A stretch of 64,000 nucleotides of DNA from Dimorphilus gyrociliatus (taxonomy: Eukaryota > Animalia > Annelida): assembly GCA_904063045.1 (NCBI GenBank), contig CAJFCJ010000003.1:496001-560000 (forward strand), in the 5' to 3' direction. The translations under genes and the position numbers were made by a program. The notes under the pieces are model-generated. The model saw only the letters and a program-made list of their open reading frames with translations, made no database searches and was not told the DNA's origin. Positions 43,236-46,688 of the stretch are shown one piece after another. Each line of letters begins with the position of its first letter. The first letter of the stretch is position 1.

Positions 43236-45377
43236 ATGAACGGATTATCTTTTAGCGAACTATGCTGTTTATTCTGCTGCCCGCCCTGCCCATCGAGGAT
43301 TGCAGCTAAATTGGCATTTCTTCCCCCAGATCCTACTTATTCTATCATATCGGACGAATCTGGCTCCAGATTTAGCTTACACCTGACAGAAAGAGCTGAA
43401 TGGCAATACGGGCAGAGAGAATTAGATTGGATTGAGGTTAGTGCTTTTGACTCATCGTTATGACACAAAAATTGATGGAGTGGTATAAAAGCCTACGCTT
43501 CACGCCTTAAGCTTTCATATGTACTTCTTTATAGAAGGATGTCTTTATAACTTATTTTAATATTACTAGAAAATCAAAGAATGTCTTTGTACAAGATGTA
43601 TATTGGCATATATATACATATAGGAGAGGTATGTCACATCGGTATTATATACCTATCTAAATGGTAGATGGTCTACTAAAATACCACTAAACCTGCCCAC
43701 TGTGATTCTATACAATTAAACTTGATACTTGTTGATTAGTTACTTCATTACGCTTTTTTTTTAAACATTAGTTTTATAATGACAAAAATAGTAATAAATA
43801 TAATAAGGAATATTTGCACTAAAACTAATCAATTTGCTAAAATCAATTACAAGAACTAAAATTATGTTTGATATATAAATAAACGCTCTTTTTCTTGGAG
43901 CGTATCAGAAAGATGATCAACTTAATTTATGTTGGAGAAGAGAATATTGATATTTTACTTATACATAATATATTTTTTATTACTTTTTAATTTAAAAAAA
44001 AGCAAAGTGTTATAGGCGTTTAAAAATGATTAACAATTAATAGGCGTTATTATAATTTGATTCTCTCTAGTCAGAAGAATAGAAAAACTTGACTTATTTT
44101 TTCTTCTCTTTTCTATCGGCTTTATATTTAGTTTAATAAATAAATATACTGTATATCAATAAGTTTTTTTTCCAATTTATAGATCCTTGCTCCTCCTTTT
44201 ATTATTATATCTTAATGATTTGGTGCGTTTCCGTAAATATAGTTTGTCCTAGATGTTTGACGCTTGAAATATTAAGTACAATATAATCGATAAGAAAGAT
44301 TGTTAATTATTATCATTTTTTTAGGTAAATTAGTAGTTTCTATATAAACATATATATGTATATTTAAATATACAGTGTATAATATATAGATGAACTAGTT
44401 CGTATTTAAGAATATATTAAATTATTGCAAGGTACACTCTCCACTGTTGTTTTACAAGGTATATAATCAATTACTTTCTATGATTCTCTCTAAGTGTTAA
44501 CAGTACTTGTTCCGCATGCATAAAGGGCAGAGAGATATTATGAGCTTAATTCAGTACATTTTTTTCCCATTAAATAACGCTTTTATTTTTTTCGCCCCTT
44601 GTTATTTTATACAAAAGATTGTGTTTTTTTTTACAGGTTTTTAAAATTAGAACGTCGAGGAATAACCGGATAGCATGCGCCTATATTCGATGTTGTCCAA
44701 AAGCAAAATATACTGTTCTCTTTAGCCATGGAAATGCCGTAGATTTGGGCCAAATGACCAGCTTTTATATAGGATTAGGAACGAGAATCAACTGTAATAT
44801 ACTGTCCTATGACTACAGTGGTTATGGAGTAAGCACAGGAAGACCGTCTGAGAAGAATTTGTATGCTGATATAGACGCTGCCTGGGCTGCATTAAGAAAC
44901 AGATATGGTATTAGTCCTCAAAATGTGATATTGTATGGTCAAAGTATAGGAACGGTTCCTACAATTGATCTGGCTTCCAGATATGAGGTTGGAGCTGTTG
45001 TACTTCACTCACCATTAACGTCGGGAATGAGAGTTGCATTCCCAGAAACAAGGAGATCCTGGTTTTTTGACGCTTTTCCAAGGTTAAATTATATAGAGAT
45101 TAATTAAAGTTGATTCAATTGTCATTAACGTAAATCGTGTTCTATTTAAATTTACAGTATTGATAAAGTGCCGAAAATTACTGCCCCCGTCCTAGTCATT
45201 CACGGAATGGAAGACGAAGTAATTGACTTTTCGCATGGAATGGCAATACATGAGAGATGTCCTCGAGCAGTTGAACCACTTTGGGTCGAAGGAGCCGGTC
45301 ATAACGACATCGAAATTTTCCCCCAGTATCTGGAAAGGTTAAAAGCTTTCTTGAACAATGACCTTCTGCACGATTGA
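43236..45377 (+). CDS. ABHD17: Alpha/beta hydrolase domain-containing protein 17 (depalmitoylase)
   Basis: Exons 43236-43436, 44637-45082, 45158-45377. Palmitoylation cluster [19 protein letters not shown], triad GQSIG / EDEVID / GAGHND; TGA at 45375-45377. Confidence 0.97.
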
Positions 45378-45762
45378 CAATTAGCGGCGGCGACGACAAC
45401 GATGGTGACGGCGACGACGACTAATCTTACACCTATGCTTACCGACGATGACAGACCAACAACTGAAGACCGTCTCGAAGTTATCAGCAATCCTGTAGCA
45501 GTTGATGGTGATCAAGCTTCTAGAAATACGTCATCTCCTATTTTTACAGACGGTGGGGTAGGGGCTATGTTCAAATATGAGCAACCGAAAAGTCTCAACT
45601 TTCGGGTTATTGAAGGCGCCGAGGGACACACCGTCACCTCAACTTATTATACAACAATACCGCCATCGTCACCATCACAGGTTCAAAGATTAGCGAATGG
45701 AAAGTCTAATTCGAAAGGTTTATATGTTCATAATCCAGGGAATGGTCGATCGTCGCCGCCGC
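45375..45762 (+). promoter_or_regulatory. Readthrough signal: UGA-CAAUUA plus long-range RNA helix
   Basis: TGA CAA TTA; 45384-45396 GCGGCGGCGACGA is the exact reverse complement of 45750-45762 TCGTCGCCGCCGC; nested 45401-45410 pairs with 45667-45676. Confidence 0.65.
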
Positions 45763-45836
45763 ATTCGGATCCGGGCAGCTCACCGCGTTTTCTTGGTGGG
45801 CGAAAAAGTCCGGCGCCTAGTTCGCATTCGAACTAG
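45378..45836 (+). CDS. Candidate stop-codon readthrough extension of ABHD17 (152 codons, S/T/P/D-rich)
   Basis: In frame with the ABHD17 TGA and open to TAG 45834-45836. It is GC-rich like the exons and drops abruptly to AT-rich UTR after the TAG. Confidence 0.7.
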   Translation, partial: QLAAATTTMVTATTTNLTPMLTDDDRPTTEDRLEVISNPVAVDGDQASRNTSSPIFTDGGVGAMFKYEQPKSLNFRVIEGAEGHTVTSTYYTTIPPSSPSQVQRLANGKSNSKGLYVHNPGNGRSSPPHSDPGSSPRFLGGRKSPAPSSHSN

Positions 45837-46688
45837 ATATTTTTATGAGAATTATTTCGTTTCATTTTTTTTCTTTTTTTTTTAAACAATCATTTATTAA
45901 ATTGATTCTGTTAAAATACAAATTATAGCCGGTGTATCAACAAAAGCATAGCGGTATCAACAATAAAATCTACAGAACTGCAAGGATCCTAAACAATAGT
46001 CATGCCTACCAACCCAGTTGCTTATTTTGCATTTTTGTGCATGACTAGCATAATTTTGTGTCTTATGAATATGTATTGGAGAGTAAAAGTTGAAATGAAA
46101 CATTATAATCTAAAACACGTTCCAAATAGCTCAGTTAAAAGAGAAAAAAGCAGGCATCTCTTAATCAAAGCTTTTACCTCACCCAAATAAATATTTTTTT
46201 ATTTAATAAGAAGAATCGGTTTACGTCATATAAGAATCCTTTTAATACTTGTTTATTTCACTACTAATGATATTTCTAGATGTAAGGCTTTTGACGCTCC
46301 TTTAATTTCTTTCATTTGCCTATTCACGAAAGAGTCCATTAAGAAATCACATTTTTCATTTTGTATATATATTAATATAAATATATATATAGACAAGTAC
46401 ACATATTTCATAGGAAAATTTCATAAGTCTTCTATTACATAAGTAGCTGATTGAGTTGATAAATGATAGACACACAACCTAATAAATAATGATCAACTTC
46501 CTTTAAAGCAAGGTCCTAAAACCCTAAATTGGAATCTAAATAATGCGTTGACTAAATTACCTTAAAAAATGAGCAACCAACAGAAAAAAAAATATTTTAG
46601 AAGCAAGTCAACCGATGAGAACTCCATCTTCCATAATAAGCTTAGTTCTTTCCGGTAAAGAAAAACTAATTTCAGAAAAAAAAATACC

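Follow-up and report, generated by a model that had tools for sequence, protein, structure and literature searches.

A possible two-element readthrough signal, with a long-range 13-bp RNA helix, in ABHD17 mRNA from the annelid Dimorphilus gyrociliatus

Stimulators of frameshifting and readthrough act at the mRNA entrance of the ribosome. In tombusviruses and luteoviruses the readthrough signal comprises a local stem-loop that pairs, through its bulge or loop, with a distant element located hundreds to thousands of nucleotides away. Extended stem-loops, which occur in alphaviruses and several plant virus genera, have stems of 10–12 bp or more that start 7–12 nt after a UGA stop codon, connect arms 96–154 nt apart, stimulate readthrough and are marked by two peaks of synonymous conservation (PMC3159437). 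The set used for comparison here (Firth et al. 2011, PMC3159437) comprises the alphaviruses VEEV and SINV, the furo-, pomo-, tobra- and pecluviruses, and the coltiviruses. Benyviruses combine the sequence stop-CAA-UUA with a stem about 9 nt downstream (PMC3159437), and the CAAUUA motif works in animal cells (PMC13517186). For cellular genes, RNAz analysis has indicated conserved structures no more than 100 nt from the stop codon in 9–10% of the readthrough candidates of Drosophila and Anopheles (Jungreis et al. 2016, PMC5100048). For annelids, a limited literature search returned one proposed case of readthrough, the Platynereis EFLGa peptides.

ABHD17 is a depalmitoylase acting on membrane-anchored signalling proteins. 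Its gene in Dimorphilus gyrociliatus lies in the 64-kb stretch of DNA analysed here (hereafter the window, numbered from its first letter). A preliminary description of the window had proposed that the UGA stop codon of this gene is followed by a TMV-type hexamer and by the first arm of a GC-rich 13-bp helix, and that the helix is a distal stimulator of the kind known from viruses. On the evidence below, we tentatively propose a readthrough cassette in the ABHD17 mRNA with the helix as its second stimulator, a proposal to which we give a little less than an even chance. The features concerned are as follows.

43236–45377, plus strand: ABHD17 coding region, 288 codons and stop (exons 43236–43436, 44637–45082 and 45158–45377)
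45375–45383, plus strand: leaky stop context, UGA at 45375–45377 and the hexamer CAAUUA at 45378–45383
45378–45836, plus strand: in-frame extension of 152 sense codons, an open frame that ends with TAG at 45834–45836
45384–45396, plus strand: 5′ arm of the 13-bp helix, GCGGCGGCGACGA, read as codons GCG GCG GCG ACG A
45401–45413, plus strand: 5′ side of a nested helix that is exact over 10 bp and reaches 13 bp if a 3-nt bulge is allowed, its register being particular to this lineage
45660–45676, plus strand: 3′ side of the nested helix, the exact 10-bp partner being 45667–45676
45746–45935, plus strand: highly conserved block of about 190 nt, sliding-window invariance 0.76–1.0 versus 0.43–0.7 in mid-extension
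45750–45762, plus strand: 3′ arm of the 13-bp helix, TCGTCGCCGCCGC, read as codons TCG TCG CCG CCG C
45837–46149, plus strand: 3′UTR after the second stop, to the end of the transcript contigs (L001 aligns to 46148)

The exons of ABHD17 were joined by mapping of the L001 transcript and translate into 288 amino acids. The identification of the gene upstream of the helix as ABHD17 holds, the protein being 99% identical to the L001 protein, for which the best named match is Dimorphilus gyrociliatus DgyrCDS2063. For comparison with the window, two relatives were recovered from public assemblies, the contigs being L001 (from a spliced transcript, with the full ABHD17 ORF, stop and extension) and the genomic L002 and L003. 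The hexamer CAAUUA does stand directly after the UGA, as had been noted, and TGA-CAATTA shows no change among the window, L001, L002 and L003. The extension encodes a Ser/Thr/Pro-rich peptide, in which no Pfam family was matched. Its dN/dS is 0.12–0.14 at a dS of 0.6–1.0 in the three lineages; the values for ABHD17 itself, window versus relatives, are dS 0.51 and dN/dS 0.02. From these sequence comparisons, purifying selection on the encoded peptide is clear, and among antisense and alternative-frame ORFs, considered as a cause of the conservation, none exceeds 67 aa.

The extension has a narrow distribution. Searches by word and by profile, and an HMMER search over 1.84 billion representatives, found only the window protein and two relatives as homologues; an 852-aa match was rejected as an unrelated low-complexity protein. 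In other animals, ABHD17 terminates at this same point. In the Logan transcript L005, the TGA of ABHD17 is followed by 5 codons, with neither extension nor arms. The Owenia fusiformis gene (L004, 18867–19052) has TAA-C and then 60 open codons that are unrelated to the extension, probably open by chance, and contain no arms.

Stop-codon readthrough is the best reading of how the extension comes to be translated, because the extension has a coding signature, is continuous with the stop in the same exon of the RNA, lacks a SECIS element and follows an invariant TGA-CAATTA; we infer on these grounds that readthrough occurs. In the RNA contigs, and likewise in the L001 transcript, the stop, both arms and the extension follow on exon 3 without interruption, all on one unspliced exon. 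The X15 contig of 1,708 nt has both introns removed at GT..AG joints and runs through 45156–46149 without a joint or a difference, and an 818-nt contig from a coral metatranscriptome (X1) joins 44893–45080 to 45156–45785. Neither contig, from two independent runs, has a joint that bypasses the stop or a base change in it, and splicing or editing around the stop was rejected as seen in these two contigs; rare isoforms and low-level editing lie below what such contigs can exclude and are compatible with them.

We consider it quite improbable that the extension is translated without readthrough, be it by termination and reinitiation at AUG 45402, by selenocysteine insertion, by rare A-to-I editing that turns the UGA into UGG, or through an uncommon splice isoform. 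Reinitiation is conceivable because the in-frame AUG 45402, 24 nt after the stop, is conserved in all three lineages, as is AUG 45435. Such routes sit poorly with a classic leaky stop context that is invariant, with an ABHD17 frame that is kept despite a 6-nt indel between stop and AUG, and with RNA from two runs that passes through the stop unaltered. Editing by ADAR would need a duplex, whereas the stop codon lies outside any predicted duplex in the minimum free energy (MFE) fold. For selenocysteine, an Rfam scan of 45100–46400 (E ≤ 10) detected neither a SECIS nor any other family, its three matches all being unrelated and below threshold. A splice from AG|GT at 45337/45338, the sole splice-like site upstream of the stop, to the AG at 45382–45383 was also rejected, as this 45-nt intron would shift the frame into an early stop. 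The sequence AAAGGTTAAAAG at 45333–45347, in the last coding exon, resembles the 5′ splice site of intron 2 and is unused in the RNA contigs.

The complementarity between the arms is exact to the base (100%), as first described, with 353 nt between the arms, and 11 of the 13 bp are G:C. The helix also begins where it had been said to begin, just after the ABHD17 stop: its 5′ arm starts with the 7th nucleotide after the TGA, leaving a 6-nt spacer. The preliminary description judged a chance match unlikely in AT-rich DNA. The AT-rich composition of the window is borne out, and shuffles of the extension, the 64-kb window and the genome all show a 13-bp helix to be rare. A perfect inverted repeat of at least 13 bp appeared in 2 of 2,000 codon permutations of the extension, in 4 of 2,000 protein-preserving synonymous permutations and in 4 of 2,000 dinucleotide shuffles; with the 5′ arm also required to fall within the first 20 nt, the count was 0–3 per 2,000 shuffles. 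Across the window, the arms form the sole inverted repeat of at least 12 bp and at least 60% GC within 500 nt. Counting both strands, the 77.9-Mb genome has just four copies of the 13-mer of the helix, two of them being the arms themselves. A genome-wide count of TAGCAATTA showed no enrichment over control.

The same description had allowed that triplet composition raises the chance of such a match, which is correct and can be quantified. Each arm is a series of in-frame NCG codons, Ala-Ala-Ala-Thr in the 5′ arm and Ser-Ser-Pro-Pro in the 3′ arm. In such a series two positions out of three, those of the CG dinucleotides, are self-complementary. The reverse complement of an in-frame NCG run is itself a run of this kind, so 8 of the 13 pairs follow automatically from the choice of NCG codons. 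This automatic pairing favours a reading in which the complementarity is incidental: two NCG runs are each conserved for a reason of their own, the 5′ run as an extended primary-sequence stop context and the 3′ run as part of the 190-nt conserved block, and any readthrough is due to UGA-CAAUUA alone, as in tobamoviruses. Contexts of the tobamovirus type work without extended structure (PMC3159437). The stop context, directly next to the 5′ arm, may reach past 6 nt, and positions beyond +6 can matter in some systems (PMC13517186). The codon tract 45384–45421 that contains the 5′ arm fits an incidental origin as well, since it draws many unrelated metatranscriptome contigs, at a likeness of at least 80%, as low-complexity sequence.

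Several observations weigh against this incidental reading, the main rival, which we regard as possible and rather doubtful. Shuffles that preserve codons or protein reach 13 bp in just 0.1–0.2% of cases, and genome-wide the 13-mer is close to unique. Elsewhere NCG codons are avoided: they account for 8 of 8 comparable codons in the arms, 18% in the ABHD17 coding sequence and 27% in mid-extension, and none of the 22 Ala codons of the ABHD17 coding sequence is GCG. The helix also starts at a spacing typical of recoding stimulators.

Folding, which the preliminary description had named as a check, places the 13-bp helix in the MFE structure of 45375–45840, with z = −3.5 relative to shuffles. The partition function gives a pair probability for the helix of 0.86–0.99 in the window in three sequence contexts, and of 0.86–1.0 across the window, L001 and L002. 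The isolated 13-bp duplex has a computed energy of −28.8 kcal/mol, and RNAalifold retains all 13 pairs for the three lineages. On these predictions the helix would be expected to form in vivo. The folds show a single, direct long-range helix, and the interval from the stop to the 5′ arm holds no local hairpin. The 3′ arm has a rival partner in the window, 45400–45417, which wins in a truncated fold.

Within the tract 45384–45421, composed of GCG, ACG and GAC codons, CGGCGACGAC is nearly duplicated, with one copy at 45388 and the other at 45409. Pairing of the latter with the 3′ arm would give an alternative conformer, in this lineage only.

The nested 10-bp helix of the preliminary description, 45401–45410 with 45667–45676, fared less well. 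It is exact in the window, but its register is not conserved among lineages: the predicted energy is −22.6 kcal/mol in the window (13 bp with the bulge), −19.5 kcal/mol in L002 (10 bp, shifted) and −13.3 kcal/mol in L001 (8 bp, weak). With register and strength both varying, we rejected it as a conserved element; the homologous regions do retain some pairing, which we do not take as a sign of selection.

The arms of the 13-bp helix behave differently from the nested helix, in that both are identical in all three lineages. Covariation, which had been named as a further check, is absent: all 13 pairs are identical in the three lineages, and with neither arm varying there are no compensatory changes. 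Since the arms are invariant, conservation of the sequence is inseparable from conservation of the pairing, and the incidental reading gains from the lack of covariation. The arms were defined from the window alone, so invariance of their codons in the relatives is an independent test, one that favours constraint. Counted over invariant amino acids with four- or six-fold degeneracy, 31 of 72 codons are invariant overall; the four-fold-degenerate codons of the arms are invariant in 8 of 8 cases and those outside the arms in 23 of 64 (~35%), with a probability of roughly 3e-4 for 8/8. The nearest changes lie at the arm borders, at 45398 (the first synonymous change after the 5′ arm) and at 45747 and 45764, which flank the 3′ arm. 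That invariance stops exactly at the arm borders argues against an incidental match.

Other aspects of the conservation point the opposite way. In L001 the 5′ arm is intact and is immediately followed by 6 extra in-frame nucleotides, an inserted CGA/GAC repeat unit (L001 985–996 versus window 45396–45399); this indicates triplet slippage in the tract, as the incidental reading would have it. The 3′ arm forms the 5′ edge of the block of about 190 nt, so that its conservation is not arm-specific. The block, almost invariant in three lineages at a synonymous divergence of about 1, takes in the final 29 codons of the extension and, beyond the TAG, reaches ~100 nt into the 3′UTR. Locally the 3′ arm is unexceptional because 19 of 26 tail codons with invariant amino acids (73%) are themselves invariant, a level of synonymous invariance that the incidental reading would obtain from the block in any case. 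Of the two peaks of synonymous conservation, that at the 5′ arm runs into the stop context and the 3′ one contains the arm as the edge of the block. The block 45746–45935, judged from its sequence, resembles a regulatory element under constraint of its own. Weighing the evidence on both sides, we put the existence of a selected RNA helix at slightly better than an even chance.

Two features of the conserved block are recorded for completeness. Its AU-rich 3′UTR portion holds TTTTTAT-like motifs. A hairpin at 45817–45836, CTAGTTCG-CATT-CGAACTAG, includes the second stop, TAG 45834–45836; its 7 outer pairs are invariant in the relatives and its top pair is broken in L001 and L002.

A helix that forms and is selected could serve another role than the stimulation of readthrough. 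It might bring the 3′ block and its presumed binding factors to the stop, compact the long 3′ region in a way that affects mRNA stability, NMD sensitivity or localisation, or provide feedback, being melted whenever ribosomes translate the extension. The helix does juxtapose the stop with the start of the 190-nt conserved block, it is predicted to pair strongly in all three lineages, and a span of 353 nt is unusual for direct stimulators. We nevertheless think such a role unlikely, given that the 6-nt spacing suits an element directed at the ribosome and would otherwise be a coincidence.

The description of the helix as a virus-like distal stimulator is borne out in its geometry near the stop, a 6-nt spacer and 13 bp being close to the extended stem-loops of Firth et al., but not in its span, the loop of 353 nt being two to three times longer than the 96–154 nt of the viral examples. 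With the viral extended stem-loops ABHD17 has in common the UGA, a stem of 10–13 bp near the stop and a 3′ arm deep within the readthrough ORF; as to synonymous-site conservation, by which the viral arms stand out, both ABHD17 arms are invariant, the 5′ arm beside the stop context and the 3′ arm within a conserved block. Its spacer of 6 nt is 1 nt below the published range of 7–12 nt, and its stop context is CAAUUA where the viral ones have C or CGG. Unlike the viral cases, ABHD17 is a cellular annelid mRNA and has no compensatory substitutions in its arms.

Other described signals share single elements with this locus. The hexamer CAA-UUA directly after the stop is identical to the tobamovirus type I context, whereas the stop is UGA rather than UAG and the −1 codon ends in U rather than A. 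Benyviruses have a local 12-bp hairpin with an 8-nt loop, in contrast to the long-range structure of ABHD17. The insect cases (Drosophila headcase and kelch, and the RNAz candidates) likewise concern a cellular gene with UGA-C, a long coding extension and a predicted 3′ structure, but the insect structures are local, no more than 100 nt from the stop, while the ABHD17 helix encloses the whole extension and the host is an annelid. As in tombusviruses and luteoviruses, a distal downstream sequence pairs beside the stop; unlike them, ABHD17 has no local stem-loop and forms one direct helix. What sets the locus apart from described signals is its span of 353 nt, the presence of CAAUUA alongside the helix, and the phylum of its host. 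The locus is probably best filed as a new member of the 3′-structure-assisted readthrough signals.

The proposed mechanism is as follows. Most ribosomes would stop at UGA 45375–45377 and release the normal 288-aa depalmitoylase, and a fraction would decode the UGA by a near-cognate tRNA, aided by CAAUUA, and add a Ser/Thr/Pro-rich tail of 152 residues. The 13-bp helix, at a predicted energy of about −29 kcal/mol, would close the whole extension into a 353-nt domain. With the UGA in the A site, the helix would stand at the ribosomal mRNA entrance because its base is 6 nt after the stop; the 6-nt spacer would put the first pair at about +13 from the first P-site nucleotide. There it would most likely act as a second stimulator of the alphavirus and furovirus extended stem-loop type, resisting mRNA movement and eRF1 accommodation and so allowing more time for the near-cognate tRNA. 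That the helix raises readthrough in this manner is plausible from the modelled structure and its placement, if a shade short of an even proposition.

A more far-reaching version of the readthrough proposal is that a spiralian cellular mRNA carries a virus-like two-part signal, CAAUUA plus a 13-bp helix that closes a 353-nt readthrough ORF and sets a conserved block beside the stop, and this we hold to be distinctly less than likely. A readthrough ribosome would melt its own stimulator, since the 3′ arm lies within the extension. Were the two-part signal real, it would amount to a self-limiting switch governing how much short ABHD17 is made relative to the long form.

Should the helix stimulate readthrough, ABHD17 would provide a cellular, non-insect example of the extended stem-loop signal, which is supported mainly in RNA viruses, and would combine this signal with the TMV-type hexamer, the two being usually seen as alternatives. 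It would also mean a second ABHD17 isoform with a lineage-specific, phosphorylation-prone tail, and would point to readthrough as a source of protein isoforms in the compact genome of Dimorphilus.

Spliced ABHD17 transcripts near-identical to the window were found in a coral metatranscriptome, and a close variant in a marine metatranscriptome (runs X1 and X2). Judging from these sequences, the worm or a near relative appears to live in the coral and marine samples concerned.
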